Of a stretch of DNA of 64,000 nucleotides, positions 1 to 64,000 are shown in pieces. The translations under genes were made by a program, and so were the position numbers. How positions within the stretch are numbered: the stretch's first letter is position 1; each line of letters starts with the position of its first letter. Below the pieces are notes generated by a model. It made no database searches. It was not told the origin of the DNA and was given only the letters and a program-made list of their open reading frames with translations. The stretch lies in sequence record PQ390715.1, one strand, 5' to 3'.

Positions 1-552
1 TTCGGTGGCATTGCGTGAACCAATACCAGTCCAGTTACCATGTGGTGCTGGAACGACGAATGTTTGTGTGAACTCTTTCAGTACTGTATCGAAATAAAAT
101 ACTGAACGTGAATTCATATCATAACAATAAATTTCAGGATTTTCAACTGAATCCATATACATCTGTACTGCCCATGCAGTACCACCACTTACCTTAGTTG
201 GTGATGTGATATTTGCAATACAATATATTCTTTCTGTATTAAGTATCTGATAACTATTCCTTGCAAGTAAGTTGTAAACATAAGAACCAGGTTTTGGTAC
301 TTTTCGCTGCAACGAGTAACATGCAATGTTTAGTTGATTTAATATAGAAATATCAGATAGAATATTGGATGGTATTTCTAATATAGTACTTTCATCTACA
401 CTATGCTCATGACCTTTGAATGAAAAATTAATAACTTCAAATCCATTATTTTTTGCATAGATAGAAAAAAGGCGGTCAGCACCTGCTGCCCCGCCACTAA
501 AACATACATTAGATAAACCTTTAATTGCTTCATCTAATTCATTCTTTTTCAT
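1..552 (-). CDS. SLOG-superfamily nucleotide-binding protein (partial, runs off window start; absent from ORF track)
   Basis: Manual translation from ATG at 552: MKKNELDEAIKGLSNVCFSGGAAGADRLF...SGGTAWAV...WTGIGSR. The GGAxGAD loop and GGT motif are typical of SLOG. Confidence 0.6.
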   Translation of the reverse strand, partial: MKKNELDEAIKGLSNVCFSGGAAGADRLFSIYAKNNGFEVINFSFKGHEHSVDESTILEIPSNILSDISILNQLNIACYSLQRKVPKPGSYVYNLLARNSYQILNTERIYCIANITSPTKVSGGTAWAVQMYMDSVENPEIYCYDMNSRSVFYFDTVLKEFTQTFVVPAPHGNWTGIGSRNATE

Positions 553-555
553 ATT

Positions 556-1212
556 TTATTTTGCTTTACGTTCTGCAAATAGTTGTTTTACTTTCTCAAT
601 AGCTTTAGTCTGTGAAATACCTTCTGGAATTTCTAGATAAATTGTTTTACTATCTTTCGGTTGTTCAACAACTTGTGTTTGCGGACGCAAGCTTGGCTCT
701 AAATTGTATGCACGTTCATAATGTTCTTTAGCCAGTTTTTCATATTTTTGTGCATCAGTGAGAAGTTGTTCTACAATAGTAGCTTCTTCTACTTTAGTGT
801 CCGCTTCTTGTGGATTGAATGGGTTAAAGTCTTTTACTTTACCATCTTCTTGTACTTTCGCTTGATTTTCATCTAATGCTTTGTTTAGAACATCAAGAGA
901 AATTTTATTATTACCACCAGTGTGCATATCAATGTCACAAGTACGAACGCGACGTAGATGCTGCATGTTGTGTAGAACATCTAGCATTTTGCGTCCATCG
1001 AGATAACCAATTTTATGCATTACTTCCCACAAATCAATATTAGATTGACCATGACCCATAACAATATCAGTTACTGCGTGTACATATGCTTCTGGTAGTG
1101 AATCACGATAAACGATAAGGCAGTGTTCAGGATCATCTGGTAGTGAACGCCAAACAACAAAAACACGAGAACCTGTATTACGCATTACACCAACATGACG
1201 AATAGCTGCCAT
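556..1212 (-). CDS. hypothetical protein (218 aa)
   Basis: ORF track; GGAG RBS; abuts neighbours; no recognisable motif. Confidence 0.8.
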   Translation of the reverse strand: MAAIRHVGVMRNTGSRVFVVWRSLPDDPEHCLIVYRDSLPEAYVHAVTDIVMGHGQSNIDLWEVMHKIGYLDGRKMLDVLHNMQHLRRVRTCDIDMHTGGNNKISLDVLNKALDENQAKVQEDGKVKDFNPFNPQEADTKVEEATIVEQLLTDAQKYEKLAKEHYERAYNLEPSLRPQTQVVEQPKDSKTIYLEIPEGISQTKAIEKVKQLFAERKAK

Positions 1213-1214
1213 AA

Positions 1215-1475
1215 TTATTCTCCTTTATCTTCTTGAGTTTCACTATCTTGTGATTCAGCTTCTTCTTTAGCTGCATCTTCTTGTGCTTTAATATCTTCAA
1301 GAGCTACATTTGCAAAAGAAACAAATTTAGATACAACTGGAGCAACCTCAACAAGTTCTTCAACTTTAAAGGTGTTTCGTGCAACAGCAGCTTCCATGAT
1401 TTTTGCAGCATTGATTAGGTCTAGAAGGGTTAGTTGAATTTGATTATTTTCTTGTTCCATTTTAATACTCTCCAT
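1215..1475 (-). CDS. hypothetical protein, acidic C-terminus
   Basis: ORF track; GGAGAG RBS; directly downstream of promoter at 1495-1523. Confidence 0.8.
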   Translation of the reverse strand: MESIKMEQENNQIQLTLLDLINAAKIMEAAVARNTFKVEELVEVAPVVSKFVSFANVALEDIKAQEDAAKEEAESQDSETQEDKGE

Positions 1476-1494
1476 GTATATTGGTACATTAACT

Positions 1495-1523
1495 ATTATA
1501 TCATATTTTTATAAGTTGTCCCA
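1495..1523 (-). promoter_or_regulatory. GGGACA-class promoter
   Basis: Minus strand TGGGACA, 16-nt spacer ending TGA, TATAAT; same pattern at 20504, 31604 and 55435. Confidence 0.65.
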
Positions 1524-1526
1524 CTT

Positions 1527-1557
1527 ATAAAAGAAGAGAACGGAATTTTCCGTTCTC
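1527..1557 (-). terminator. Rho-independent terminator
   Basis: GAGAACGGAA/TTCCGTTCTC stem followed by T-rich tract on minus, just after the VWA gene. Confidence 0.8.
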
Positions 1558-1569: not shown

Positions 1570-2994
1570 TTAACTACGTTGACGCTTTTTATCAGCTTCA
1601 TATTCGTAGTGTACAGTCTCACCAAATGGTGCAACTTTATTTGGGTTACTGTGAATCACGAACAGTGTTTTACAGTAGTTTGGATCACCCCATGACTGCC
1701 ACGGTTCACCATCAGTAAACATTACAAGCTGTTTAGGCTTGTAGTTGTCGTTCTTCATATGAACCCATACTGCTTCAAAGTCAGTACCACCACCACCTTT
1801 TACTGGATATTCCAGAATCTTACGTTCTTCGCCAGTTTTGTAATCCTTTACAGTATAAACTTCAGTATCAAAAGTCATGATACGAATCTTAAACTGTTTG
1901 AATTGTTTAGTGATGCCAAGAACTTCACTAATGAAATCACGAAGCATATCTTCAGAAATAGACCCAGAAGCATCTAGTGCAATCGCAATATCAATATCAT
2001 CATCTGGTTTCATCCCTGGGTAAATTGGATTACCATAGAATGAGCCATTAGAACCAAAACCTGCACCCCAAGAACGACGATTCGGATTTTGATATGTTGC
2101 ATCAGACTTCAACCAACTACGAAGTGTACGTTGAAGTTTTGAACGCCAGTCAATCTTTGGTTCTTTAAAGTTGTTAATCATACGAGCGATTTCTGCTGGT
2201 GTACCACCTGCACGAGCAGCATTCATCATTGCTGTTTTGAAATCATCCATGTAATCACGTTTTTGCTGTTCACTTGAACCACCCTCTTGACCTTCTTGTG
2301 GAACGTCATGCTGGTCAATGGTAGTACCTTTTGGTTTACCCTTACCATCTTTAATATCGCCAAAAGTACCGCGATTTTTACCTTCACCTTCACCGCCGCC
2401 ACTTTGTGGTTGACCTTCACCTTCACCATCTTCTTTTTGTTCTTCTTCTTCAAGAAGAATGTAAATCTCTTCTGCGGTCATGCCTTCATATTTTTTATCA
2501 TACAACCATGAACTTTGGATTTTCCCAATTTTCTCACGAACGATGATTTGGTTAATGGCATAATCCGCTGCACGGTTATAACGTTGTGGATCACGCATAC
2601 CACGACGAAGGAAGTGATCGTAAGCACAGTGTAGAATTTCATGACAAATTACAGCAACAAGGTTTTCATCAGTCAAACCTTCAGTCATTTCTTTTAATTG
2701 TTCGTCTGTAACTTCAGGGTGCTTTTCACGAATAGCTTCTTCATATTCTTTCTTTTTAGATGGGTCTTGAATGCCCATTACAAATTCTACGTTGTAGAAT
2801 AGATGTTTACCATCCACTGCTAGAGTACGACACCATGTATTATTAGGAACTGGACGTAAACGTGAAGCGAGTACACCAAAGAATGGTGCAGTTAACATCA
2901 AAGATGTACGAGCCAGAACCAGACGTTCTTGACATTCTTTCTGGAGTGCCGGAGATACTTCATTGAATCTTGAAGTAGATTTGTTATCTGACAT
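1570..2994 (-). CDS. DUF2201-type metallopeptidase plus VWA-like domain protein (MoxR partner)
   Basis: HEILH zincin motif after LAVDGKHLFYN; C-terminal MIDAS motif DASGS, GGGTDF and FTDG. Confidence 0.85.
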   Translation of the reverse strand: MSDNKSTSRFNEVSPALQKECQERLVLARTSLMLTAPFFGVLASRLRPVPNNTWCRTLAVDGKHLFYNVEFVMGIQDPSKKKEYEEAIREKHPEVTDEQLKEMTEGLTDENLVAVICHEILHCAYDHFLRRGMRDPQRYNRAADYAINQIIVREKIGKIQSSWLYDKKYEGMTAEEIYILLEEEEQKEDGEGEGQPQSGGGEGEGKNRGTFGDIKDGKGKPKGTTIDQHDVPQEGQEGGSSEQQKRDYMDDFKTAMMNAARAGGTPAEIARMINNFKEPKIDWRSKLQRTLRSWLKSDATYQNPNRRSWGAGFGSNGSFYGNPIYPGMKPDDDIDIAIALDASGSISEDMLRDFISEVLGITKQFKQFKIRIMTFDTEVYTVKDYKTGEERKILEYPVKGGGGTDFEAVWVHMKNDNYKPKQLVMFTDGEPWQSWGDPNYCKTLFVIHSNPNKVAPFGETVHYEYEADKKRQRS

Positions 2995-3018
2995 GTATAT
3001 TTCCTCGTTTAGTTAAGA

Positions 3019-3049
3019 TAAAAGAAGGATACCATTAGGCATCCTTCTT
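3019..3049 (-). terminator. Rho-independent terminator
   Basis: AAGAAGGAT/ATCCTTCTT stem plus T tract on minus. Confidence 0.7.
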
Positions 3050-3068
3050 GTCAACAACTCTTTGTTAA

Positions 3069-4394
3069 TTAGCCAAGAGAGCGTGCTTTACGTACAAGAT
3101 CAGAGTACTTAGCGATGAAATCTTTAAACGCTGGTACATCTTTAATGGAAATCGCAACCTTATGAAGCGTGATGGTACGAATTGCCAGTACTGCCAGTTC
3201 TGCTTGAGTTGCAGAGAAGTTATGGTCTAGGAAGGTGATGAAGTTGTTACACAGTTTACCCCATTCTTCCACTGGTAGACGTTGTTCTTGCTTCTCATTG
3301 AACAGGTCGATAATTTTATAAACCAAGTTCAGAGTGATAAAGTAGTTCGCAGAAATATCCAGCGTTGCGTCGATTTCTTTGATTTCACCAGACAGAATAG
3401 ACATAGTATCTGGTAATTTAGCAACGTTCTCAACGTACTCAATGTATTCAGTTGCAACACCTTCACCAACACGACCAGCAATCATTGCACGGAACACTTC
3501 TTTATCAATTGTCTTAGTTTTCTTGAGATCTTCGTAGCGTGCTACTGCTTCCCATGAACGTGGAGAAGTACCACCACTGTGAGAAGGATCTTGTGGACTA
3601 AGTGTGTTAAAGTACTTAGAACCAGTGTTGTTGATGAACGCAACAGTTGCTGGGTTCAAACGTTTTGCAATCGCATAATCGTTAATCCAATCTTGATGAT
3701 AAGGAATCATCTCAATGTGAGTCATACGGTCACGCAGTGGTGTAGCAAGAGAGAAAGTTACACCGCCATCAGTTTCACGGTTACCTGCTGCAAGAATCAG
3801 TGCAGTCTTAGGTAGCTTCATCTCACCAACACAACGGTCGAGGATTAGCTGATAAGACGCTGCCTGAACAATAGGCATTGCAGAGTTAATTTCGTCAAAC
3901 AGAATAACACCTTTCCAATCTTCGGACAATTTCAGAACTTTAGGTGCAGCCCATACTACCGCAGTTTCAGCTACATAATCTTTTGCTTCGGCAAGCTCAG
4001 ATTCTTTCAGAAGAGAACCGTCAGTTTTACGGAAAAGCTTCTCTGGTACTGGAATACCGCGAAGGTCACTTGGTTCGATTTGAGACAAACGGAAATCGAT
4101 AAAGTTAGTATCTTGGTCGATTAGTTTTGCTTCAAATGCAGCCAGTTCACGGCGTAGCTGATCAGCATTTTCAGGGTCAGCTTCGATTTGTTGTTTCATG
4201 AACTCGATTTTAGCTACGTTATCTTTACGCAGTGGGTAATTTTCATCAGCGTATTGACGAGCGATTGCAGACTTACCGATACCTGGGCTACCCCAAATCA
4301 TCAGGCTATCTTGAATCATGTCAGCTAGTGCCATTGCTTCTTTAGCTTTCTTTGGAGTCAGTTTAACGTTCAGGATATCGTTTTGAGTAGTCAT
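3069..4394 (-). CDS. MoxR-like AAA+ ATPase
   Basis: Walker A GSPGIGKS, Walker B ILFDEIN, ILAAGNR, arginine finger LRDR, SPRSWE; adjacent to the VWA gene. Confidence 0.9.
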   Translation of the reverse strand: MTTQNDILNVKLTPKKAKEAMALADMIQDSLMIWGSPGIGKSAIARQYADENYPLRKDNVAKIEFMKQQIEADPENADQLRRELAAFEAKLIDQDTNFIDFRLSQIEPSDLRGIPVPEKLFRKTDGSLLKESELAEAKDYVAETAVVWAAPKVLKLSEDWKGVILFDEINSAMPIVQAASYQLILDRCVGEMKLPKTALILAAGNRETDGGVTFSLATPLRDRMTHIEMIPYHQDWINDYAIAKRLNPATVAFINNTGSKYFNTLSPQDPSHSGGTSPRSWEAVARYEDLKKTKTIDKEVFRAMIAGRVGEGVATEYIEYVENVAKLPDTMSILSGEIKEIDATLDISANYFITLNLVYKIIDLFNEKQEQRLPVEEWGKLCNNFITFLDHNFSATQAELAVLAIRTITLHKVAISIKDVPAFKDFIAKYSDLVRKARSLG

Positions 4395-9129: not shown

Positions 9130-11237
<2,108 letters not shown>

Positions 11238-13202: not shown

Positions 13203-15866
13203 TTATTGAGTTTTCTCGATACGGATTGGTACGTAAATGAAGTTAATACTCTTAGTTGGTTGAATTGCAATATCCATCCAAAGTTCATTACGGTCAATAC
13301 GCTCTGCGGTGTTGTTACTTTCATCACAAACCACTGCGAAGTTATAAAGACCCTGTTGTTGAACAATTTCAGCCAAGAAGCTATTAACTACACCACTAAA
13401 TTCCTGACGAGTACTTGGAGTATTCAAACGGAATAGGAATGGTTCGGAAATAATTTCTAGTTGACGACGAATATAAACAACTAAACGAGCAACGTTAACA
13501 CGACTTAGTGCAGAAGTTTGATTAGCAGATAGAGTTTTATCTCCATAAACAAGCAATCCACGGTTAGGACGCATTGCAATTGGGTTAATGTTGTTAGTAT
13601 ACATAACGTCACGTTGACCTTGGTTGTATACTACTGGTTGATATTCACCTTCGCTGTTGATAAAACCAGTACTTGCAGCGTTTGTTACAACACCACGAGT
13701 TGTACCAGCAGGTGGATACCATACATAACTAACACTATCACTGTATGCATATGTACGCATTGCAATAGTACTACCAGGAACTGCAACTTCTTCACCATCA
13801 ACGTTAGTACTTAGACACCAACCCATATACTGAGCAGCATAATCATAAGCAGTTGTACGACCAACTGAACCGTTGCTTGGTGCATTGTTAGCATTAGTAG
13901 CCCATTGTTGTACAGCACTACCGTTTCCGGTTGGATTCAAACGTGCTGGAACGTCAGTAACAATAAATGCAGTTTCTTTACGATCAGTGTTTAAAGTTAC
14001 ACATTCATCAAGTGTTTCAACGTAACCAGGTACACAAATTAGGTTAAAATCAATAAATTCAGAACGAATGTCATCATTACCAATAATAACAGCAGCTAGT
14101 GCTTCAACTACTAGTTGACGTTGTGCAGCACGACCAAATAGGCCAGCACCATCAAGACTTACACCACTAACAACTTCCCATTGACCATTAACCATTTTCT
14201 TAACAACACCTTCAGTGTTACCTAGGTCAACTGCAAGCATACCATTTTGATACAATGCCGCAGCAGGAACTTGGCTTGGGAAATTAAAGTCTTGGAAAAT
14301 CATACCATTTAGTGTACTTTGATCAGTACTGTCAAGTTTAACCCATTCACCATCAACGTTACGATAGAAATCATAACCATCAATGCCTTGAGACAAAGGA
14401 CAAACCCAAATTAAACGGTCAGCCGCTGGTTCATCAACTTGTACATATTTGTTTTCTTCTTGTACTAGATCCCATTGATCATTAGCAACATCAGCAACAT
14501 ACATAGTTACAGTTAGATTATCGGAGTTCCCGAAATCATACCAGAGAGTTCCTTCTTTTGCTACACTACGTGGTACTGAATAACTAACACGGAAGTTATT
14601 AACGTTAATTAGAGAGTAGTTGTTACTATCTACAGTTAGTTTTTGTAGTTCAGGTTCAGCAAAAATATCATCACCACTTTGTGTGATTTTGAAACTGTAA
14701 CCTTTTGTATTGGAAACAACTAAACCACCATTAGTTTCACGTTTAAATTTAAAACCATCGTTAATAATTTCAGCATTTGCATTTAGATTATTGATGATAG
14801 TTTGGGTATTAATAACACCGCCTTGTGGAACTGCTAGTACTTTAACTGATTTATTCAAATAAACAAAAGTCATATAACTATCAGCACCTGCTTGTTCAAT
14901 AATAGTTTCACCAAGTGGCAAAGCAGGAGCACTAATTGTTGTTAGTTTTGCACTTTGAATATAGAAAGAGAAACTCTTACTATCTTCATCAAAACGAGAT
15001 GCGATATAACTATTGTTTAGTACACCACTTTTCGCTTCAATTTCTTGGAATGAATTACCAGTATATGCTGGTACAATATTCCAAACTTGAGTTAGGGATG
15101 CATAACGTTTAATAACAAAACGAGTACCAAAATAGTTTGAACCATTTTGGGTGTAACCATCACGAATCCAAATGTTACCTTTTTCTACAGTTGAGCCAAC
15201 TGGAACTTTGTTAATTGGTGATAGATAAGTTTCCATTTGCACTAGCCCAGAAGCAGAACGTTTATACATTAGCATCTGACCATTGCTTGGTTTGTAACGT
15301 AGAACTAAATCATCAACATTTAAACCTACTAGACTTACATCTTCAACTTCTTCAGCACTTACAATAGTTACTGGCTTAAGTTGCCAATCATAAAAACTGC
15401 TTGGACTATCTTTCTTCGCTACATACGCTTCTACTTGTGATTGTGCGGTATCAAACCACAAAGTACCATTGGATACTGGGCCAGTTGGTGCTTCAGCACT
15501 TGGTGCTAGTTGTGCTAGATCGATATCAGCACGAATTACATATGCACGGTTAGTAATGCCTAGATAAGAATATACTGCATGTAGGCCATATTCGTTTAGT
15601 TCATCACCTTGAACAACAGAACCGTTATTCATTTGAAAAATTGGTGTACCATAGGTATCAAGTGAGCTTTTTTGTGATGTTAGAAGCTGTAGTTTTCCAG
15701 CGTTTGCTTTAGTAGTTCCCGCAGCTATTGCACTGCTTCCTGGGACAAGTTTGTCTTCAGCAGTAGCGATTACAAATAGTGGTACAGTGCCAGGAGCAGC
15801 AGCGGTACTCATACTTTCATCAGTTACTGAAATGGAAACGCCAGGTGAGAGTAGATCTCCTGCCAT
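13203..15866 (-). CDS. gp18: tail sheath protein
   Basis: N-terminal LLSPGVSISVTDES; C-terminal WYPPAGTTRG, GDKTL, ALSRVNVARL, CDESNNT, IQPTKSINFI motifs. Confidence 0.95.
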   Translation of the reverse strand: MAGDLLSPGVSISVTDESMSTAAAPGTVPLFVIATAEDKLVPGSSAIAAGTTKANAGKLQLLTSQKSSLDTYGTPIFQMNNGSVVQGDELNEYGLHAVYSYLGITNRAYVIRADIDLAQLAPSAEAPTGPVSNGTLWFDTAQSQVEAYVAKKDSPSSFYDWQLKPVTIVSAEEVEDVSLVGLNVDDLVLRYKPSNGQMLMYKRSASGLVQMETYLSPINKVPVGSTVEKGNIWIRDGYTQNGSNYFGTRFVIKRYASLTQVWNIVPAYTGNSFQEIEAKSGVLNNSYIASRFDEDSKSFSFYIQSAKLTTISAPALPLGETIIEQAGADSYMTFVYLNKSVKVLAVPQGGVINTQTIINNLNANAEIINDGFKFKRETNGGLVVSNTKGYSFKITQSGDDIFAEPELQKLTVDSNNYSLINVNNFRVSYSVPRSVAKEGTLWYDFGNSDNLTVTMYVADVANDQWDLVQEENKYVQVDEPAADRLIWVCPLSQGIDGYDFYRNVDGEWVKLDSTDQSTLNGMIFQDFNFPSQVPAAALYQNGMLAVDLGNTEGVVKKMVNGQWEVVSGVSLDGAGLFGRAAQRQLVVEALAAVIIGNDDIRSEFIDFNLICVPGYVETLDECVTLNTDRKETAFIVTDVPARLNPTGNGSAVQQWATNANNAPSNGSVGRTTAYDYAAQYMGWCLSTNVDGEEVAVPGSTIAMRTYAYSDSVSYVWYPPAGTTRGVVTNAASTGFINSEGEYQPVVYNQGQRDVMYTNNINPIAMRPNRGLLVYGDKTLSANQTSALSRVNVARLVVYIRRQLEIISEPFLFRLNTPSTRQEFSGVVNSFLAEIVQQQGLYNFAVVCDESNNTAERIDRNELWMDIAIQPTKSINFIYVPIRIEKTQ

Positions 15867-15960: not shown

Positions 15961-16587
15961 TTATGTATTAGAATAAATAATGTCCATTGCTTTTTTATGT
16001 AAATCATCAATAGTACTGTTATTCTGTACAATTATATCAGGATTGTTTATGCCAATCCAAGCCCACTCAGATTCGTGTACTGTTTCTAGTTCAACTGGTT
16101 TAATATTAATATCCCCTTTATTATAAGAGGCCGCCAAACCATACCAATGTGGTAGAACACGTTGAACTTCAATAATAGTCCCATTTTGCGATCTAATCAT
16201 TTTTAATTCATTTGGAAAACGGCAATCAGTGATGATGATATTTCCATCTATTTCTTGCATTGATTTTTCTAAACTGAATACCCAAATATCATTATGAAAA
16301 TACTTACGCAAAATATTAGTACCATAATTCTGCAATACCCATCGAGGGGATACATCACTACGACCTAACTTATCACACCAGTACTGGTCCGGTTCTTCAC
16401 GAATCTTACGACTTTCCTTAGTTGAACCTTCAAGCATTTCACGATCCCATCCAAAAATAGCAGCAACGGAATCTTTAAGATTAGTTGCAAATGACATTCT
16501 GGTGTAACCATTATTAATAAAAGTTTCTCCAAAAGTATCTTTACCACTTCCAATAGTACCGTTAATTGCAATTATTTGTCTTTCCAT
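15961..16587 (-). CDS. gp1: deoxynucleoside monophosphate kinase (T4 gp1-like)
   Basis: P-loop GTIGSGKDT, SPRWVLQ.YGT, ITDCRFPNE, HESE. Confidence 0.9.
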   Translation of the reverse strand: MERQIIAINGTIGSGKDTFGETFINNGYTRMSFATNLKDSVAAIFGWDREMLEGSTKESRKIREEPDQYWCDKLGRSDVSPRWVLQNYGTNILRKYFHNDIWVFSLEKSMQEIDGNIIITDCRFPNELKMIRSQNGTIIEVQRVLPHWYGLAASYNKGDINIKPVELETVHESEWAWIGINNPDIIVQNNSTIDDLHKKAMDIIYSNT

Positions 16588-31144: not shown

Positions 31145-31326
31145 TTCTCAAATTTTGGACGGATCTTTCTTGTACCAAAATTTAGAGAGCGAAAGCGGGT
31201 TGCTCGGTTTCTCTCTATCGCAGTCATATGCAACGGTCGCTGGTCTTTTCATCAACAGCACTCAGTACTAACTCTATTCGATCAAAGTAGTACTTGTTCT
31301 CAAATTTTGGACGCAACTTTCTTGTA
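31145..31326. repeat. two 30-nt direct repeats (31145-31174 and 31297-31326)
   Basis: TTCTCAAATTTTGGACG(GAT/CAA)CTTTCTTGTA, 27/30 identical. Confidence 0.9.
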
Positions 31327-51271: not shown

Positions 51272-51458
51272 ATACTAAATGATTAAAATGTTCTGTATTC
51301 GCATACTTTGCTAAGTCGGTTATGAGGAAGTTTGTATCTTTAAATCTGCCATCATTGTATGTTGTGATTTGAAAACGTAGTTCAGGTGCAAAAATATAAT
51401 AATAGAATATATCATTTACACACCCAACAGTATGCTTAGCATATCTTTCAATTTTCAT
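51237..51458 (-). CDS. hypothetical protein
   Basis: Start MKIERY overlapping the upstream stop (ATGA). Confidence 0.6.
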   Translation of the reverse strand: MKIERYAKHTVGCVNDIFYYYIFAPELRFQITTYNDGRFKDTNFLITDLAKYANTEHFNHLVFVYCIPNPNKK

Positions 51459-52446: not shown

Positions 52447-52480
52447 TTAAAAAGTACTGCCCACTGTGGTAGTACTGATA

Positions 52481-52840
52481 TTAAATGTAACGTTTCTTTT
52501 TATAATCATACCCTACTGCTTTGTAAAAATCAAACAAAGAAGCATGTTCAAATGTAGGTAATAGGTCATATGGGTGCTGATAGTTCGCAATACCAACAAT
52601 AGCCAGCATTGATTCAGCAGTTCTTACGTTCTCACTATCCCATTCATCCAAACGCCACAGTGAGCAAAGTACCTCTCGTTCATGTTTCTTACCCAGAAAG
52701 AATCCAGCTTCACGGTCACGAAATGCACCTACACTGATAGTACTTTTGTACCAGTCTTTTTCACCATATAATGGCATACGGATAATATGTTTTTCTTTAG
52801 CTTCTCCAAAGCGATGAAGAAATGCTACATAATCACTCAT
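52481..52840 (-). CDS. hypothetical protein
   Basis: ORF track. Confidence 0.7.
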   Translation of the reverse strand: MSDYVAFLHRFGEAKEKHIIRMPLYGEKDWYKSTISVGAFRDREAGFFLGKKHEREVLCSLWRLDEWDSENVRTAESMLAIVGIANYQHPYDLLPTFEHASLFDFYKAVGYDYKKKRYI

Positions 52841-53007
52841 AATTTATAACCCATTACAGGTTTGGTATGATCCGGTTCGTAAGACTTTTCAGTACTGAAC
52901 CCTCTGAAATTACCACGACCTGGATTCGGGCAAGCCATCCCTTGTACTGAATGCTTACCCTTATCTTTGCCACAATTTTTACATTTGTAGTCAATTACTT
53001 CTTTCAT
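52837..53007 (-). CDS. 56-aa putative Zn-binding peptide (not in ORF track)
   Basis: MKEVIDYKCKNCGKDKGKHSVQGMACP...; fills the gap with overlapping start/stop. Confidence 0.6.
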   Translation of the reverse strand: MKEVIDYKCKNCGKDKGKHSVQGMACPNPGRGNFRGFSTEKSYEPDHTKPVMGYKL

Positions 53008-55434: not shown

Positions 55435-55464
55435 ATTATATCATGTATGGGACATAATGTCCCA
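55435..55464 (-). promoter_or_regulatory. GGGACA-class promoter overlapping a 10-bp-arm palindrome
   Basis: TGGGACA, N17 spacer ending TGA, TATAAT; palindrome TGTATGGGAC/GTCCCATACA. Confidence 0.6.
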
Positions 55465-55471
55465 TACAATA

Positions 55472-56911
55472 TTACATATTTTCTTCAGCAAATTCAGCTA
55501 GTGGTGAGCGAACAACACCTTCAAGTTCGATGACACGACAACCTGCCCAATCTTTAAACTTCTCAGTTACATATGTCAAACCACTGTTAACAGGACTAAT
55601 AAACTTACTGTCAATCTGACTCAAGTTACCCATAATTACTACTTTACAGTTTAATCCTGCTCGTGTCAAGATTGTTTTGGCTTGTGCAGGTGTAATGTTT
55701 TGGAATTCATCAACTACTAGAATAGTGTTGGTGAATGAACGTCCACGTACAAAGTTTAGTGCTTTAAATTGAATAACATTACGTTTCATAATCTCTTCAA
55801 TACTACCTTGTGGGTTAGCATCATCTTTATGAAGAAACTCTAACGCGTCAATTGCGGCTCCACAGAATGGAATAACTTTTTCTGCTTCTGAACCTGGCAA
55901 GAAACCAATATCTTCAAACTGTGAGTCTTGAGTTTTAGAGAAGATGATTCGGTCGTATTTACGTTTTTCCAGTACTAATTCTAATGCAGTAGCAATCGTA
56001 ATTAGTGTTTTACCAGTACCAGCAGAACCTAGCAGTACTGTTAGATGTACATCAGGATCGAGAATACTGTTGATGGCGAGTGCTTGTTGGATATTCTTTG
56101 CTTTAATATCCCATACTTTAGCACGTAAAGCTACTGATTGTCCAATATCTTGGAATACCAAAATATCTTCTGGTGTTAGTGTTCCATCATCTTCCTCAAT
56201 TGCTGATTGACCTTCGTACACAAATAATACGTCTGCATCATCATATAGATAATCACCGATGCATAGATTTTGTGGAAGCAAATGTTCAATCAAGCTTTTA
56301 GAAATGTAATGATACAAACGACGACCAACTTGTTCGGATTGAATATTAGTATTGGATAAGTTGCTATATACTTCCCAAAAATTAATTTCCAAATGGTGTT
56401 GACCAATGTGAATCAAATCACTATCACCAATAACAATATCATGGCGATAATCTTGTACCTCGACACCATAACTTAGTGCTTTGATACGCATGTTGATATC
56501 ACGAGTTACCAGTACTGATTCTGTTGCTAAAGCTACCAGAATGATTTTATCATCAGGTACTGTGCTTTTGAGAAGGGTTTGAACTTTCTCTTCTGAACCT
56601 TTAGTACGAATTAGTGCCTCAGCTTCTTCGTTTGTAATAACAAACAATTTGCTATCAGGATTCATATTGGTATGAACATCAGCAATATTAACACCAGTAC
56701 TACTAATCTCATCATGTGATGCATCTGCAATAATTGCTTCAATGTTACGAATAGCAACACGAGCATCGCGTGAAACATCTACATTACGACTCTTAATTGA
56801 ATCCAATTCTTCCAGTACTGTAAATGGTAGAATGATTGCAGCACCATCAAAAGCAATAGATGCATTAGGGTCAGATAGTAGTACGTTTGTGTCAATTGTA
56901 TATTTTTTCAT
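55472..56911 (-). CDS. phoH: PhoH-family PIN plus ATPase protein
   Basis: PIN IDTNVLL, VLEELD, LVTRDINMRIKA; GSAGTGKT; VRGRSF; DEFQN; GNLSQID. Confidence 0.92.
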   Translation of the reverse strand: MKKYTIDTNVLLSDPNASIAFDGAAIILPFTVLEELDSIKSRNVDVSRDARVAIRNIEAIIADASHDEISSTGVNIADVHTNMNPDSKLFVITNEEAEALIRTKGSEEKVQTLLKSTVPDDKIILVALATESVLVTRDINMRIKALSYGVEVQDYRHDIVIGDSDLIHIGQHHLEINFWEVYSNLSNTNIQSEQVGRRLYHYISKSLIEHLLPQNLCIGDYLYDDADVLFVYEGQSAIEEDDGTLTPEDILVFQDIGQSVALRAKVWDIKAKNIQQALAINSILDPDVHLTVLLGSAGTGKTLITIATALELVLEKRKYDRIIFSKTQDSQFEDIGFLPGSEAEKVIPFCGAAIDALEFLHKDDANPQGSIEEIMKRNVIQFKALNFVRGRSFTNTILVVDEFQNITPAQAKTILTRAGLNCKVVIMGNLSQIDSKFISPVNSGLTYVTEKFKDWAGCRVIELEGVVRSPLAEFAEENM

Positions 56912-56971
56912 AAAACATCCTTGAGTTATGAGTACATCCTTGTACTCGACTAATGTTATTGACTCGGATTA

Positions 56972-57274
56972 TTACATATTTGGTTCGTATTCAACATAGC
57001 AACGTGAACCTCGAACCTTTTCTTCCCAGCACTCCTGGTAAACAAGTTGACCAATTGAAACTGGTTCTCTTGATAGTCCATTACGTACTTCACCATTTTG
57101 GGTTTTATACATAAATGAACATTTGGACTCGCTACATTGTCCTAAACTAACAACTTCTGCGGTATTGTAGTGAATGTTGGTACGCTTAGTGTTCTCGTGA
57201 TACTGTCCGAACCAAAGAACTCCTGCACCTAACAGAACAGTACAAATAAGACTTTTGATGTGTGTTTGAATCAT
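56972..57274 (-). CDS. small membrane-anchored protein
   Basis: N-terminal TM; four Cys in the soluble part. Confidence 0.7.
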   Translation of the reverse strand: MIQTHIKSLICTVLLGAGVLWFGQYHENTKRTNIHYNTAEVVSLGQCSESKCSFMYKTQNGEVRNGLSREPVSIGQLVYQECWEEKVRGSRCYVEYEPNM

Positions 57275-57591
57275 AATGAGTTAAATCCATTGTTTAAGTA
57301 TGTTTCAATATTAATTTTACCAACAGGATTACTACTGTGAACAAAGTACTCAAACGGTTCTTTAATATTATTATCAAACATATAATCAATAAGAAACTTA
57401 GCAAAAGAATATCCAGTCTTTTCGTCTTCGCTCACATCACCCAAGTCATGGTCGAATGATACAAATGCTGGAATTCCATTTTCAATAACATATTCACATG
57501 CACTTTTAAAGTCACGACATACCACCATATCTTGGTTTGGATAATATAGATTTGCATCACGAATATCATCCAAAAACATTGAGTAAGACAT
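57271..57591 (-). CDS. cyclic-phosphate-processing receiver (cREC)-like domain protein
   Basis: FLDDIR, SFDHDLG, TGY..AK.L, HSSNPVG motifs. Confidence 0.75.
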   Translation of the reverse strand: MSYSMFLDDIRDANLYYPNQDMVVCRDFKSACEYVIENGIPAFVSFDHDLGDVSEDEKTGYSFAKFLIDYMFDNNIKEPFEYFVHSSNPVGKINIETYLNNGFNSL

Positions 57592-57600
57592 GTTAAACTC

Positions 57601-58152
57601 CTATAGATAACTAATTAGTAAGTTTTCTTTTTGAACCAGATACTCCAATTCTTGTTTTGCTGTACCGATGAAGTTCTGTGTCATAAGATTATTATATCCC
57701 GCTTCTCGATTTTGTCCCTTAGAATAACGAGAAATATGACATAAATTTACACCAGCAACTTCTGCACTTGCATGTTTAGCATTAGTGTATCCATCTCTAA
57801 TGTGTTTCAACTCGTCATAGCTCACTTCATAGCTAAAACTATGACTGTTTGCACCTGGGTAAATTTCAAAAGTTTTGAGTGGTCGAAGATGGGAAACAAA
57901 AATATTGTAATCCATTTCTTCTTGAACTTCACGACGCAACGCATCTTCTAGTGAGATATCAGTACTTTCTACGGTTCCACCACATCCACCAAGAAGACCA
58001 TCCCATCGTAATTGCAGTAATACTAAATTTACTTCTGGTATATCATTCAACTCATAGTTTTTGTAAGGGTTGCATTTTCTTGCAAAGAAATAACAAAATA
58101 CAAAATTTGCACGTGTGCCATATTCACCAAAGGGAACTTCTTTAACACTCAT
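57601..58152 (-). CDS. NUDT16-like Nudix hydrolase
   Basis: LLQLRWDGLLGGCGGTVE..DISLEDALRREVQEE; AKHASAEVAG; NFIGTAKQEL. Confidence 0.7.
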   Translation of the reverse strand: MSVKEVPFGEYGTRANFVFCYFFARKCNPYKNYELNDIPEVNLVLLQLRWDGLLGGCGGTVESTDISLEDALRREVQEEMDYNIFVSHLRPLKTFEIYPGANSHSFSYEVSYDELKHIRDGYTNAKHASAEVAGVNLCHISRYSKGQNREAGYNNLMTQNFIGTAKQELEYLVQKENLLISYL

Positions 58153-58907
58153 TTCATACGTTCCTTAATTATAGTCTCTAGATGCGGTATTGCTTTGGTT
58201 GCTGGCTTGATAACTTTTTCATTAAACAAAAAATCATTATCATTTTTACGAATGTTAACATTAACACTATAACATGGTAATGCTGCTGCTAATCTCGACC
58301 ATACCAGTACTGTATCGCTACTACCAATTACAATAACTGTATCATTTTCATTAAGAGATTTCAACACATTATTTCGTTCTTCGTAAATTGGTAAGCGAAT
58401 ACCATCAACATAACGATGATATTCTCCAATCATTACTACATTTGGTTTAGCAAAAACATCATGTTTTGGTATGTATGGTTCGTATCCGCAGTTAATAACA
58501 TTATAATCATCGGAATTGATACTATAATTTTCAATAACTTCGCACAAGTTTCCATGAAGTTTAAGCTCATGACCACCAATACGAGTATAAAGATCGTCCA
58601 TGTTAGAAGTCATATGAAGGAAGCAATCACCATATTGATCTTCTAACGATTTTATAAAATAATGCATTGCATTGGGTTCGCATTGTCCCAATTTTACACG
58701 TAATGTATTATAGAAAGAATGAACAACGTGATATTTCGTAGTTAAACTAGCAATGTTACATACATCATTAATTTTAAATGTATCCCACAAACCATCATCA
58801 AATCGAAAAGGTTCCATACCACTTTCAACAGAAAGTCCTGCACCTGATATAATCAGTAATCGCTTTTTACCTTCATTGCTTATAAATTTTTCTGATATCA
58901 TATTCAA
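58149..58907 (-). CDS. Sir2/CobB-family NAD-dependent deacylase
   Basis: SGAGLSVESG..FR, TSNMDDL, LHGNL, PNVVMIGE, VIGSS. Confidence 0.88.
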   Translation of the reverse strand: MNMISEKFISNEGKKRLLIISGAGLSVESGMEPFRFDDGLWDTFKINDVCNIASLTTKYHVVHSFYNTLRVKLGQCEPNAMHYFIKSLEDQYGDCFLHMTSNMDDLYTRIGGHELKLHGNLCEVIENYSINSDDYNVINCGYEPYIPKHDVFAKPNVVMIGEYHRYVDGIRLPIYEERNNVLKSLNENDTVIVIGSSDTVLVWSRLAAALPCYSVNVNIRKNDNDFLFNEKVIKPATKAIPHLETIIKERMK

Positions 58908-58910
58908 TCC

Positions 58911-59105
58911 TTATAAAAAACCAATTAAATATATTGATAATAACAGAATGATTCCAATATGATAGGCATACATAAAATTATTATCTTTGTGATAACCATT
59001 GGATTTCAAGTCCCTGTATAAGCATTTAGCATTGTTATAAATTACAACAATAAAAAAAACTATAAAAAAACTCAAAACCCATTCATAAATTGTGTATGCC
59101 ATCAT
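58911..59105 (-). CDS. small two-TM membrane protein
   Basis: Two hydrophobic segments. Confidence 0.65.
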   Translation of the reverse strand: MMAYTIYEWVLSFFIVFFIVVIYNNAKCLYRDLKSNGYHKDNNFMYAYHIGIILLLSIYLIGFL

Positions 59106-59131
59106 CTATTCTCTCTTATAATTATATAATT

Positions 59132-59725
59132 TTAATACTTTAAAACATCAAACTCGGCACTTACACTAGTTACATTATCACTGACAATTTTAAAAATTGA
59201 TTTGATGCGTTCATGTAGTGGCACTTTTGATTCATTTTCAACTTCAATATATGCTTGCATTGCTGCAATAGCATGATATGTTCCGCTACCTACGGCTGTG
59301 ATTCGTGTTTTTGGTTGAAGAACTGAAAAATCTTCTTGAACTTCATAAATTGTATGATTGTGAAGAATGATGAACTGTCCACCACCTACTTCTTGTGAAG
59401 GATCACGAGAACCCCATTCCTCTTTGAACATTTGACGAATGATTGGAATAACTTTAAGAACCAAATATTGTGAAAATGTTTGACCAGCAGCTTGTTCAGG
59501 TAAATTAAGGTTATAATTTAACAACTGACCCATACGAAATGATGTAGTATAACCCAATGCTATTACTTCTTTAGTTCTAGTTAGTCCATCATCATGTAAC
59601 TTGATAAATTCTTTCTCGAATACCTTTGGCTCAGTTTGAACAGTTTTTGTAAATCCATTGCTTCCTAACTTATCCCCAGCAATAAAAGAACTTACTCCGT
59701 CAGTGTGTGCAATAATACAGGTCAT
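59132..59725 (-). CDS. HslV/proteasome-beta-like Ntn hydrolase
   Basis: Start MTCIIA (Thr2 nucleophile) after GGAG; AGD, AVGSG...A..AM. Confidence 0.65.
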   Translation of the reverse strand: MTCIIAHTDGVSSFIAGDKLGSNGFTKTVQTEPKVFEKEFIKLHDDGLTRTKEVIALGYTTSFRMGQLLNYNLNLPEQAAGQTFSQYLVLKVIPIIRQMFKEEWGSRDPSQEVGGGQFIILHNHTIYEVQEDFSVLQPKTRITAVGSGTYHAIAAMQAYIEVENESKVPLHERIKSIFKIVSDNVTSVSAEFDVLKY

Positions 59726-59982
59726 AAAATAGCTCCAATTGCAAATAATGTTGTGTATAAGATATAAATTAGTGCTCCTAACAACATTAGGCACACCAAG
59801 TATGAAGTTGATAGTACATAATAAATTATTGCTTCGAATTTTGAATTGAACTTCATTGTAGTTGGATCAATAAAGCCATTACGATAATCTTTGTAAATGA
59901 AAACTGTTAGAAAAATAACTGTAGCATACATTACTACAGTAGCATAAAAAATAATAGATGTCAAGTTTTGGATGTTTGTCAT
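59722..59982 (-). CDS. small two-TM membrane protein
   Basis: Two hydrophobic segments. Confidence 0.7.
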   Translation of the reverse strand: MTNIQNLTSIIFYATVVMYATVIFLTVFIYKDYRNGFIDPTTMKFNSKFEAIIYYVLSTSYLVCLMLLGALIYILYTTLFAIGAIL

Positions 59983-60052
59983 AGTTATATAATCTCAATA
60001 TAATTAATAACAAAGGAAGTACATCATAATCATCCTGTTATTTTAATTATTT

Positions 60053-60661
60053 TTATTGTTTGACTGAACCGTAAAAAACCAGTTCTGGTTTTGTTAATAT
60101 TACAACATCTTCACCACGAGAACGACTAACTCTAAATAGAACTTCTGGTGGGATTCCATTTGCTGCATATAGTGAAAAAAGGAAACCTACCTTTGTTGCC
60201 ATTTCTTCGGTAAAAGTTGATAGCTGTCTTACAGACACAAATGAATTATCACCATCACTAACATTACTTTTAATCGAAATGTTATGAAGACCCAGTACTG
60301 AGCGATTTGTCATATATCGCTTTTCGGGAGATACACTAAAGAATACCACAGTACATGCTGAATTGCAATACCTAGAAACAATTAAATTTATCCCATTGTC
60401 TCTAACAAAGTTTGCCATTCGAATACCTGCATCAAAATCACCACCAGGAGATGTAATTGTGATGGTATCATAGTGTTCTTTATCATACAACTCTATCATA
60501 CGCTTGAGTGACCCATCTGTAATATCTGATATGAAATATACATTTCGGGTTTCAGGATTATACTTTATCACATTTTTACTTTCAATACCAGCACTGGCTG
60601 GAAAATTTATTAACAATAGAAACATCGCTGCTTGTATCACTTCAAGCCATAGTCTTTTCAT
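60053..60661 (-). CDS. exported ClpP/crotonase-fold peptidase-like protein
   Basis: Signal peptide; ITSPGGD, CNSAC, LGLH. Confidence 0.65.
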   Translation of the reverse strand: MKRLWLEVIQAAMFLLLINFPASAGIESKNVIKYNPETRNVYFISDITDGSLKRMIELYDKEHYDTITITSPGGDFDAGIRMANFVRDNGINLIVSRYCNSACTVVFFSVSPEKRYMTNRSVLGLHNISIKSNVSDGDNSFVSVRQLSTFTEEMATKVGFLFSLYAANGIPPEVLFRVSRSRGEDVVILTKPELVFYGSVKQ

Positions 60662-62040: not shown

Positions 62041-62509
62041 TACTTAACAATGCGTTTTTACACAAATCATGAATTTTCATAACTCGAATATAGTTTAACA
62101 CATCTGTTTCATTAATTTCAAATGGTTTATCTGCATATGTGGACCACGTTTGATTTAATTCAATAACAAATGTAATTTTATCTGTATCCATAATATTATC
62201 ACAAAATCTACGAAAATCTTGCTCTTCATCGGAAAGTCTGAAATTTAAATCATTTTTTAAACCATTAACTGTGAAGCAAATACCAGTACTGTAACCGATG
62301 CAAATATCTTCAATATCATATAATCCATAAATTAATTTAGAGATAAACGTTCTATATTTGTTTCTATGATAATAGTTTAATATTTCTTGTTTAATATTAA
62401 TTTCAATATCAGTAGTTTTTTGTAATGTAAGTTTAATTAATTCTAATGTCTTGATTATGTTATCTAACCAGATATTAGTATCATCTATACTTAGGTGTGT
62501 GTATTTCAT
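61985..62509 (-). CDS. hypothetical protein, paralogue family D
   Basis: EILNYYHRNKYRTF...KPFEINE; resembles 62481-63035. Confidence 0.7.
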   Translation of the reverse strand: MKYTHLSIDDTNIWLDNIIKTLELIKLTLQKTTDIEINIKQEILNYYHRNKYRTFISKLIYGLYDIEDICIGYSTGICFTVNGLKNDLNFRLSDEEQDFRRFCDNIMDTDKITFVIELNQTWSTYADKPFEINETDVLNYIRVMKIHDLCKNALLSIGAYNETYDLVEDSRSSC

Positions 62510-63035
62510 TATGTCCCTCTAGATTCCAATCATCAACGAGTTTAGAACAAACTTCCATATGATTATAGTACTTTTCATCCAATACATACGGTTTATTATG
62601 ATATTGTCGTACATCAGTGAATATATCATAATTTCTATATATGAATGACATATTTTTATGCATTAATTCTATAGTTTTCCAAATTTTCTCAATATCATAT
62701 AGAATTGTTTCTAATGACAAACCTGTTAACTTGGAAATTCTTTCAACTTTAAACCCTGATAACATCATAGTACTGTTGTGTTTAGTTAAGTAACTATATC
62801 CAATAGAACTATGTATTAACTCAATACTATCAGTGTATGTGATTGTTTTTAGAAATGATTTTATATTTCTATTAAACCAATACCACTTTTTGTTTTTATT
62901 ATAACAACTATACCATTTCTTCAATATATCAATTGCTTCAGAATTAATTTTTAAAGCAAATTCATCAATTAAAAACATATGATGGTAAAAAATATCACTT
63001 TGTTCTTCAGTTAAATTATATTGCTGCATATTCAC
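62481..63035 (-). CDS. hypothetical protein, paralogue family D
   Basis: DILKKWYSCYNKNK...KPYVLDE. Confidence 0.7.
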   Translation of the reverse strand: MNMQQYNLTEEQSDIFYHHMFLIDEFALKINSEAIDILKKWYSCYNKNKKWYWFNRNIKSFLKTITYTDSIELIHSSIGYSYLTKHNSTMMLSGFKVERISKLTGLSLETILYDIEKIWKTIELMHKNMSFIYRNYDIFTDVRQYHNKPYVLDEKYYNHMEVCSKLVDDWNLEGHNEIHTPKYR

Positions 63036-63155
63036 CTACCCTAGTAACAATGATTCCTTGGGTATTTAGCTCATATAGATCAAAATATGATCAATGGAAA
63101 ATTGATATACAGCAATAAAAATAGGAATCCCATGATAGGATTCCTTTTCACAATA

Positions 63156-63602
63156 TTATTTTTGATATGGGGTGTACTGATATTTTTCACAATCAGCGAC
63201 AGTTAGAACACCTTCATCATAACCATATTGAAGTACAAGGTCAAATGCTTTATCAACCATAGCAACAACATCTTTATAACGAACAATCTTATGAGATTGA
63301 TTCTCAACTGCTTTCATAATCCCCATTAGCAACCAGCGACCTTCATCGGTGTGTAATTTAGCAAAGCGTGGACGCTTTGTCGCTGCCATAATATCAGTCC
63401 ATTCAGCTTTAAAAATGTGTGGACGTTTTGGAATATCATATAGTGTAGTAGGGAAAGTTACATTATTTTTCTTCATTGCTTCTGCTTGTGCTGCACGATA
63501 GCCCTGACGATATAATGGATGCTGCATTTTTAGCTGTTCAGCACTTAGAACTACTTTTGCTTTGTATGCGTCATAACCATCTTTATATTGTGCATTGGAC
63601 AT
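63156..63602 (-). CDS. hypothetical protein
   Basis: ORF track; YKDGYDA/YRQGYRA repeat; terminator at about 63123-63145. Confidence 0.75.
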   Translation of the reverse strand: MSNAQYKDGYDAYKAKVVLSAEQLKMQHPLYRQGYRAAQAEAMKKNNVTFPTTLYDIPKRPHIFKAEWTDIMAATKRPRFAKLHTDEGRWLLMGIMKAVENQSHKIVRYKDVVAMVDKAFDLVLQYGYDEGVLTVADCEKYQYTPYQK

Positions 63603-63603
63603 A

Positions 63604-63894
63604 TTATTCTTTTACCTCATCAGTTTGAATGTATTTTTTGTCAGAGAATGTACCGTGTTCTTTACGCACAGCTTCTGCATGTTGAACCGCATCAACTGGA
63701 TTAATGTTCTTTTTAATTAGTACTTCCTTCATTAATTCAAGTACAATTGCAAAACCATTCAGCACACGCTCAGATTCATCTACATTTTTTAATTCAAGTG
63801 CTACTGCACTAATTTGATCGAACGCAACATTAATAAAATCGGAATCTTCTAATACATTTGCTACTTCCGTATTATTACGTACTAGTACTTTCAT
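63604..63894 (-). CDS. degenerate MazG-like (phosphoribosyl-ATP pyrophosphohydrolase-like) protein
   Basis: MKVLVRNN...LEDSDF...EHGTFSDKKYI frame matches KLVRD...LDDEEY...ERGGF..RI; acidic motifs missing. Confidence 0.45.
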   Translation of the reverse strand: MKVLVRNNTEVANVLEDSDFINVAFDQISAVALELKNVDESERVLNGFAIVLELMKEVLIKKNINPVDAVQHAEAVRKEHGTFSDKKYIQTDEVKE

Positions 63895-63942
63895 ATAATC
63901 TCCACAAAGATGATGCCCCATATTGAGGCATCAAAATCTATC

Positions 63943-64000
63943 TTACACCCACTCTTCCACGCCACCGCGACGCTTAACTAAGTACTTACCTTCTTCATTT
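63943..64000 (-). CDS. 3' end of a gene starting beyond the window
   Basis: Reads ...NEEGKYLVKRRGGVEEWV-stop, followed by a hairpin. Confidence 0.5.
   Translation of the reverse strand, partial: NEEGKYLVKRRGGVEEWV

Follow-up and report, generated by a model that had tools for sequence, protein, structure and literature searches.

What keeps one short palindrome far above chance along the chromosome of a lytic phage? The question is raised by the last 64 kb of the genome of Escherichia phage SHEFM2K (PQ390715.1, 348,006 bp), in the following called the window (64,000 nucleotides; its position 1 is position 284,007 of the record), in which the hexamer AGTACT is strikingly abundant. SHEFM2K is an Asteriusvirus, a RaK2-like jumbo myovirus with G17, Sharanji, 121Q, phAPEC6 and slurp01 as near relatives. 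A preliminary description of the window had estimated about 130 copies and a five- to six-fold excess, and suggested a positively selected DNA signal. Our data reveals that AGTACT is enriched throughout the genome and among the relatives of this phage, that its sites turn over and are under purifying selection site by site, that they are more evenly spaced than random, that they occupy fixed positions in the early promoters of the terminal repeat, and that they are missing from two blocks near this repeat. We tentatively regard AGTACT as a selectively maintained recognition word of RaK2-like jumbo phages, read by a putative symmetric DNA-binding factor.

An exact search returned 137 AGTACT in the window, slightly more than first estimated, compared to 18.4 +/- 4.5 (maximum 29) in 100 dinucleotide-preserving shuffles. 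Markov models of orders 0 to 3 predict 21.5, 17.3, 27.1 and 49 copies; the excess remains at all four orders and amounts to 6.4-fold over the order-0 and 7.9-fold over the order-1 expectation, a little above the original figure. AGTACT is the most over-represented 6-mer of the window, followed by CAGTAC and GTACTG, and its sole strongly enriched palindrome, while its one-mismatch neighbours are mildly enriched. In the whole genome (the window plus the remainder of the 348-kb record) it is again the top 6-mer, with 902 copies against about 100 expected (about 9-fold). The preferred 8-mer is CAGTACTG, found 197 times genome-wide against 4.4 expected (45-fold): C stands at position -1 in 65 and G at position +1 in 59 of the 137 window sites, and the base most avoided at -1 is G (7 of 137 sites in the window, 55 of 902 in the genome). 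Past +/-1 the surroundings of the window sites carry no sequence information. The flank tables are reverse-complement symmetric in every genome region, as expected of a word that is read on duplex DNA. Along the record, density is highest at 60-85 kb (6-7.6 sites per kb) and lower at 0-45 kb (3.4/kb), at 100-150 kb (2.8/kb), in the window (2.1/kb) and among the replication and structural genes at 150-284 kb (1.8/kb).

This excess is not a by-product of the encoded proteins. As the preliminary description had noticed, the sites occur in all frames: in the window, 124 fall within genes (frames 57/27/40), and the other 13 are intergenic or overlap coding sequence in part. Synonymous-codon shuffling yields 35 +/- 5 copies in the coding sequences of the window instead of 124, and 221 +/- 14 in those of the genome instead of 763, and the 31 kb of non-coding DNA of the genome contain a further 136. 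A codon-pair Markov model, which already includes five of AGTACT's six bases, predicts 79 and 121 copies in frames 1 and 2 of the genome, where 154 and 232 are observed (about 1.9-fold), so that the signal survives the dicodon-type null that the preliminary description had named as a possible refutation. Given the amino acids of the window, AGT-ACT encodes 57 of the 111 serine-threonine (Ser-Thr) pairs, where 16.5 are expected, and the opportunities in frames 1 and 2 are taken 26 and 40 times instead of 3.1 and 9.3. Frame-1 sites require NAG and TAC codons with a usage of 17-30%, which agrees with the earlier remark that rarer, GC-richer codons are employed. One of the codon examples given for this remark, placed at about 25750, actually lies at 25770; the plus-strand codons quoted are nevertheless valid, although the genes are on the minus strand, because the local 10-12-mers (such as CCAGTACTGG) are themselves palindromes. 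Nor does a bias in the 4-mer GTAC or in amino-acid pairs explain the excess: 137 of the 379 GTACs in the window belong to AGTACT (compared to the 49 of the order-3 model), and the excess of GTAC is therefore a consequence of AGTACT and not its cause. A codon, dipeptide or GTAC artefact is ruled out by the synonymous shuffles, a codon permutation, the codon-pair Markov model and the per-frame opportunities; because codon-aware nulls fail to reproduce the excess, the signal sits at the DNA level. The proteome in turn bears its mark. Ser-Thr dipeptides number 722 genome-wide, against 488 expected and 476 Thr-Ser, so that the word adds more than 200 extra Ser-Thr dipeptides, and the Ser codon AGU is inflated by 377 in-frame AGT-ACT sites. 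The phage encodes a tRNA-Ser with anticodon ACT, confirmed by ARAGORN, beside a tRNA-Thr(TGT); this tRNA-Ser, which would read AGU by Watson-Crick pairing, may adapt the tRNA set to the DNA word.

The other palindromes of the genome show the opposite trend. Twenty-two palindromic hexamers are absent from all 348 kb, among them CCATGG, TGGCCA, GCATGC, CTGCAG and GGTACC with 46.6, 42.5, 38.9, 35.4 and 31.9 copies expected, and 27 of the 64 palindromes stay below 0.2 of expectation, whereas AGTACT alone exceeds it more than two-fold. The inference of the preliminary description that AGTACT represents the opposite of restriction avoidance is thus borne out, as the word is both enriched and selected. 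GATC and CpG reach about 0.5 and about 0.75 of expectation, respectively.

The signature is common to the RaK2-like clade. In all 11 IMG/VR loci with a tail sheath identity of 70-100% (genomes of 348-378 kb) AGTACT is the top palindrome, with 34-56 copies per approximately 22 kb compared to 5-8 expected, and RaK2 itself has 42 against 5.2 expected. None of the loci sampled at a sheath identity of 45% or less possesses an AGTACT excess. Four of these distant loci have a mild excess of CTGCAG instead (8-14 against 1.5-3.3), which may be a codon effect. The hosts of the clade include Escherichia and Klebsiella, with further hosts among the matching records. A T4-like coliphage of the same GC content is not enriched (14 copies, 18.5 expected), and a sample of E. 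coli K-12 holds 3 AGTACT in 50 kb (0.06/kb), about 40-fold below the phage; these two comparisons rule out an effect of the host or of base composition.

Is the word actively maintained? We compared SHEFM2K with ECO103 4-12-1 (OR844650.1) over 145 kb aligned at 97.5% identity. AGTACT sites are kept at 95.9%, compared to 89.7% for all 6-mers, and the six core columns are 98.3-99.6% identical, compared to about 96.5-98% in the flanks. Inside the sites 8 of 748 third-codon positions have changed, whereas the same codons (AGT, ACT, GTA, TAC, NAG and others) outside the sites predict 33.0 changes (P = 2e-7); synonymous change is hence about four times slower in AGTACT than in the same codons elsewhere. 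This inside-versus-outside rate test took the place of a gain/loss parsimony analysis, for which the outgroups were either too closely related or already too far saturated. The loss-rate ratio of 0.24 would fit weak selection at a ten-fold equilibrium, for which S = ln 10 gives 0.26. At the same time the sites turn over: 19 are unique to SHEFM2K and 30 to ECO103, and 34 of these 49 differing sites are single substitutions, with A<->T at the outer positions as the commonest class. In the sheath gene of 11 aligned genomes only 1 of 16 AGTACT columns is universal, and some gains are lineage-specific and come with an amino-acid change (e.g. TCTGTA to AGTACT).

The distribution along the chromosome is likewise constrained. 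The coefficient of variation of the gaps between sites is 0.79-0.91 in five regions, compared to 0.99 +/- 0.08 for random placement (combined P = 3e-5), and is the fourth lowest among 376 abundant 6-mers over 248 kb (median 1.07). Spacing that is more even than random suggests selection on coverage and argues against an unconstrained mutational drive. With symmetric flanks, clade conservation and the results of the codon nulls and the rate test, the positively selected signal of the preliminary description survives. Pairs of sites show no helical phasing outside promoters, and their sole spacing excess, at 18-23 bp, is promoter-related. What had been described as hairpin stems formed by two pairs of sites in the window turned out to be the trivial pairing of two copies of a palindrome (Table 1): the pair at 52453..52476 is a weak terminator-like hairpin, and a hairpin or terminator role for paired sites was rejected, the folds being not significant.

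The region in which AGTACT is densest corresponds to the terminal repeat. Asteriusvirus fEgEco12 has experimentally confirmed direct terminal repeats of 20,993 bp (PMC13070987), and its left end maps to about position 80,090 and its inner repeat end to about position 60,300 of the SHEFM2K record. This repeat holds tiny genes with promoters of the sigma70 type, in which the start of AGTACT precedes the -10 hexamer by 27 nt in 17 cases and by 7 nt in 11, following the patterns TTTAAAA-AGTACT-TGCA-N17-(G)TATAAT and TTGACA-N10-AGTACT-G-TATAAT; the word shares its final T either with the -35 hexamer, whose first base it supplies, or with the TG of the extended -10 element. The promoters of the repeat (record 60,300-80,090) are highly stereotyped and can be written as TTTAAAA-AGTACT-TGCA-N17-GTATAAT-GTTTTACATC, and AAAAAGTA fits AAAAAARNR, the consensus of the proximal UP element. 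At either of the two AGTACT positions a bound dimer would intrude on the footprint of RNA polymerase. The fixed distance to the -10/-35 elements is found in about 28 early promoters of the repeat; a sigma70 element does not explain the bulk of the sites, 763 of 902 being inside called genes.

Two blocks free of AGTACT follow on the inner side of the repeat, both outside the window and both also present in ECO103 (Table 1; the order is that of the gene sense, i.e. of falling record coordinate). The first, of 5.0 kb, begins about 130 bp from the inner repeat end and is an array of paralogues of approximately 70 residues (PHROG 4148). After 2.4 kb of mixed DNA comes the second, of 7.7 kb, in which AGTACA is the top 6-mer: it occurs 42 times on the gene-sense strand against 3.7 expected, an enrichment comparable to that of AGTACT, in all three frames and in varied contexts, while AGTACC and AGTACG occur once each. 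The same arrangement is kept in 121Q and in a 360-kb contig in which an island protein is only 56% identical; a block present at this degree of protein divergence must have been maintained, and a recent, un-ameliorated import is rejected. The island genes have no relatives outside the group. At 97% identity the AGTACA sites of the island show no significant extra conservation (29 of 33, compared to 85%). In the 5.0-kb block the opposite orientation is weakly favoured, with 9 sites against 1, some of them at paralogous positions, which may tentatively indicate an orientation flip near 54-55 kb. A replication origin between the two blocks is no more than an idea, as we found paralogue repeats there and neither iterons nor a skew switch.

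The terminal repeat contains another oriented word. Of the Chi octamer GCTGGTGG the genome has 25 copies, compared to about 1.5 expected, and nine of these are co-oriented on the gene-sense strand inside the approximately 20-kb repeat, in unrelated contexts. The cluster recurs in ECO103 (154,677-173,993 of a concatenated sequence that starts at record position 147,651). By reasoning from its orientation, it would act on RecBCD coming in from the right physical end. The Chi cluster and the AGTACT-free and AGTACA blocks together suggest a special organisation of the DNA that enters the cell first.

How might the word work? In the account that we tentatively prefer, AGTACT, with CAGTACTG as its best form, would be recognised as duplex DNA by a factor with two-fold symmetry, most simply a dimeric DNA-binding protein encoded by the phage, although the factor may also come from the host or be co-injected. 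Along nearly the whole chromosome the word is kept at roughly one copy per 300-600 bp, where the factor would mark, coat or load onto phage DNA. As the phage is about 40 times richer in the word than the sampled host DNA, such a factor could mark phage DNA anywhere. In the terminal repeat, where the word adjoins the -35 and -10 elements, the bound dimer would also regulate early transcription in the manner of an operator. The protein reader, its dimeric state and its double role in marking or organising the chromosome and in promoter control are inferred. Several observations weigh against this account. Pfam scans of 19 candidates (10 proteins of the terminal repeat, and 9 that comprise nucleases, sigma factors and the primase) revealed no DNA-binding or restriction-like domain, and we know of no enterobacterial protein that binds CAGTACTG. 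A homodimer alone does not explain the 7.7-kb AGTACA block, which hints at a directional or a second reader. About 85% of the sites are intragenic and without promoter context, and the logic of a transcription factor alone is thus insufficient. Finally, the rate tests would respond to biased repair or gene conversion in the same way as to weak selection.

Alternatively, AGTACT could be a directional signal for loading, priming or recombination, comparable to Chi, to the FtsK-orienting polar sequences (KOPS) or to primase sites; we consider this unlikely, but the oriented AGTACA block and the co-oriented Chi cluster make it a rival to be taken seriously. A translocating or initiating machine (primase-helicase, helicase-nuclease, a clamp or condensin loader, or a type II topoisomerase) would then need the word at short regular intervals, AGTACT serving both directions and AGTACA a single one in the block by the terminal repeat. 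Selection that acts on density and evenness and not on particular positions would be consistent with such a machine, and so would the conserved block with exclusively sense-oriented AGTACA and no AGTACT, the prevalence of A<->T exchanges at the outer positions, and the use of a second oriented word, Chi, in the terminal repeat. SHEFM2K also encodes its own primase, DnaB-like helicase, T4-type topoisomerase II and SbcCD-like nuclease, and a 4-bp staggered cut (A/GTAC/T) would suit the geometry of a type IIA topoisomerase. However, known primase sites comprise 3-5 nt, Chi and KOPS are asymmetric, and no known system of this kind employs a palindrome; a T4-like phage with homologous replication and topoisomerase modules is not enriched; the apparent flip in the 5.0-kb block rests on nine sites, partly paralogous; origin-like repeats between the two blocks are lacking; and a bidirectional signal gives no reason for the absence of AGTACT from the AGTACA block.

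An explanation without any function at the level of the organism is molecular drive, which appears to us rather improbable. In the course of replication or of mixed infections, near-cognate words would be turned into AGTACT by biased repair or gene conversion until coding constraint halts the build-up; analogies are very-short-patch repair and the uptake bias of DNA uptake sequences (DUS) and uptake signal sequences (USS). The weak effect per site (a scaled S of about 2.3 would follow from the rates) is as expected of biased conversion, and the continual turnover is compatible with it; density is inverse to protein constraint (1.8/kb among replication and structural genes compared to 3.4/kb among small accessory genes), and the mildly enriched one-mismatch neighbours could be read as a mutational shadow. 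On the other hand, drive predicts random or clustered spacing, whereas the observed spacing is significantly more even, and it leaves unexplained both the fixed positions in early promoters and the conserved AGTACT-free blocks that gather a different word. Known repair biases are below two-fold, compared to 9- to 45-fold here, and the differences between genomes are single substitutions and not patch-like multi-base events.

It is improbable, in our judgement, that AGTACT is the target of a covalent modification (methylation or hypermodification) by a phage enzyme, with the modified sites serving as a self-mark, and among the functions listed in the preliminary description the methyltransferase target has become the least supported. 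SHEFM2K does possess two DNA methyltransferases, M2K_0048 of the Dam family (PF05869), which adjoins a cytidylyltransferase-like gene, and M2K_0397 (PF00145, C5), a protein of 286 residues. The latter has a short target-recognition region and, among proteins of known structure, is most similar in sequence to the catalytic domains of DNMT3. A palindrome would suit a modifier that acts as a dimer or on both strands. The DNA of RaK2 is reportedly resistant to methylation-sensitive enzymes: it shows CpG methylation by bisulfite sequencing and is cut only by enzymes that are indifferent to Dam, Dcm, CpG and EcoKI methylation (PMC3622015). Yet these data concern CpG and methylation of the Dam, Dcm and EcoKI types, and AGTACT contains neither CpG nor GATC. 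The DNA of fEgEco12 is cut by ten enzymes as predicted in silico (PMC13070987). A modification target requires no enrichment, and the decay that 5-methylcytosine leaves behind is missing, with C>T at position 5 in only 2 of 34 cases and AGTATT not enriched. With Dam-family and short C5 enzymes, CpG data from RaK2 and no decay signature, the methyltransferase target was set aside as unsupported.

The host nucleoid-occlusion protein SlmA, whose binding to the phage sites would block the division of infected cells, is a very improbable reader and essentially excluded. SlmA is present in enterobacteria, the hosts of this clade. AGTACT is the core of its 12-bp site GTGAGTACTCAC, and DNA-bound SlmA antagonises FtsZ (PMC3020112). 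AGTACT supplies what SlmA requires in the core (A4, G5 and a pyrimidine at position 6), but not in the flanks. Binding depends strongly on G1, T2 and, at position 3, a purine (PMC3020112): of 752 phage sites 90 have purine/pyrimidine flanks, approximately half of what chance predicts, G at -1 is the very base that is most disfavoured, and 264 kb of phage contain no full GTRAGYRCTYAC site, which led us to reject this candidate. A compositional, codon-usage, dipeptide or repeat artefact is hardly credible and likewise essentially excluded, for although paralogous arrays are many, Ser-Thr is a common dipeptide and the phage carries a tRNA-Ser with anticodon ACT, no null model yields the excess, which is seen in all frames, in intergenic DNA and in single-copy conserved genes and is lacking in a T4-like phage of equal GC content and the same host.

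The positions of the features mentioned so far are given in Table 1 together with those of neighbouring genes. Of the 99 genes called as open reading frames in the window 93 are on the minus strand; recognisable among the window genes are the tail sheath, NrdD, the PhoH-PIN gene and the DUF2201/VWA pair. Elsewhere in the genome lie a gene for a complete sigma70-family factor, in which Pfam recognises regions 2, 3 and 4, and another that is annotated as late sigma factor and has no Pfam match. Paralogous gene arrays are numerous in the SHEFM2K genome. One of them lies just outside the terminal repeat, past a short array of tiny paralogous genes, and consists of approximately 14 paralogues annotated as 'regulator of chromosome condensation' (RCC1-like repeats).

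Table 1. Location of AGTACT-related features and of selected genes in SHEFM2K, in coordinates of the window or of the whole record
Feature	Coordinates	Strand	Remarks
Array of 137 AGTACT sites	window 80..63986	.	mean spacing 470 bp, widest gap 2,298 bp
10-bp palindrome CCAGTACTGG	window 9904..9913	.	within a minus-strand gene
12-bp perfect palindrome ACCAGTACTGGT	window 16377..16388	.	extended form
AGTACT pair, 25 bp apart	window 31264..31294	.	weak possible hairpin; -10.9 kcal/mol, z = -1.3
CAGTACT pair, 18 bp apart	window 52453..52476	.	intergenic, then T-run on the gene-sense strand; -9.6 kcal/mol, z = -2.1
DUF2201 metallopeptidase-like/VWA protein and AAA-type ATPase	window 1570-4394	-	neighbouring genes
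Tail sheath gene	window 13203..15866	-	Phage_sheath_1C domain; 6 AGTACT sites
RlaP-family nucleotidyltransferase	window 37781-39013		
PIN-PhoH fusion	window 55472-56911		
7.7-kb AGTACT-free block	record 45,283-52,990		AGTACA block
5.0-kb AGTACT-free block	record 55,436-60,423		paralogue array
Cluster of nine co-oriented Chi	record 61,655-79,494		inside the terminal repeat
RCC1-like array	record 85,291-99,853	+	
Sigma-factor gene M2K_0334	record 126,458-127,423		
Sigma-factor gene M2K_0523	record 240,629-241,468		
tRNA-Ser (anticodon ACT)	record 140,547-140,638	-	

Beyond the reader itself, RaK2-like phages might carry a genome-wide system of 'self' signalling, made up of evenly spaced AGTACT/CAGTACTG, a dedicated phage factor and a directional variant, AGTACA, restricted to one conserved block on the inner side of the terminal repeat; we put this joint proposal forward as a speculative possibility. 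If true, it would stand beside Chi, DUS or nucleoid-occlusion sites as their viral counterpart and could govern the discrimination between phage and host DNA, the loading of a replication, recombination or compaction machine, and the shut-off of early promoters. The discovery of the reader could accordingly explain how a 350-kb phage separates its own from host DNA, organises or replicates its chromosome, or silences its early promoters. The word is also of practical use, as a simple sequence diagnostic for the clade in metagenomes and as a set of about 900 defined sites for experiments. To our knowledge no such genome-wide word is known for any lytic phage, and a search of 8.4 million full texts returned no account of AGTACT in jumbo or RaK2-like phages.

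We class AGTACT as a probable genome-wide functional word, a class that is already known, although we have not found this instance described. It behaves most like Chi, DUS/USS or nucleoid-occlusion sites and at the same time fails the defining features of each. With Chi (GCTGGTGG in E. coli) it shares genome-wide over-representation of a short word far above chance, its spread over coding sequence in whatever frame, maintenance by weak selection for density, and the capacity to set own DNA apart from foreign DNA. However, Chi is asymmetric and orientation-dependent, whereas AGTACT is a palindrome with symmetric flanks and only the AGTACA block is oriented; AGTACT is also about ten times denser than Chi in E. 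coli, and nothing points to RecBCD as its reader. A strand skew of the type known from KOPS or from architecture imparting sequences (AIMS) is not possible for a palindrome, and the apparent flip of AGTACA rests on few, partly paralogous sites.

The DUS/USS of Neisseria and Pasteurellaceae likewise occur about once per kb or more densely, with an extended form that is hundreds-fold above chance, lie inside genes in all frames where they bend protein sequences, and are conserved within clades while individual sites turn over; the AGTACA block even recalls DUS dialects. In contrast to AGTACT, a palindrome of 6-8 bp in a lytic phage to which DNA uptake is irrelevant, they are asymmetric words of 9-12 nt that are read by the competence machinery of bacteria and often form inverted terminator pairs, whereas hairpin pairs of AGTACT are rare and not significant. 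SlmA, Noc with its binding sites (NBS), MatP/matS and SeqA/GATC resemble AGTACT in that palindromic sites along the chromosome are read by dimers and report the location of DNA, and the core of the SlmA site is literally AGTACT, although the phage disfavours the flanks that SlmA requires; sites of SlmA, Noc or MatP number several dozen per bacterial chromosome, compared to about 900 AGTACT in 348 kb. Virus promoter words, such as the early AAAATTGA of Mimivirus and the late TATAAATA of T4, are matched by the fixed promoter positions in the terminal repeat, but they are intergenic and oriented, whereas about 85% of the AGTACT sites lie within genes and without a -10/-35 context.

A last comparison is the avoidance of restriction sites by phages. 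AGTACT is a 6-bp palindrome and a known type II site (ScaI/Eco255I), and the same genome strongly avoids 27 other palindromes; instead of being depleted against a composition-aware expectation, AGTACT is opposite in sign, nine-fold enriched and under purifying selection. Words that are kept this far above chance have a telling precedent: Chi, DUS/USS, KOPS and the sites of SlmA and Noc each revealed a machine that reads the chromosome.

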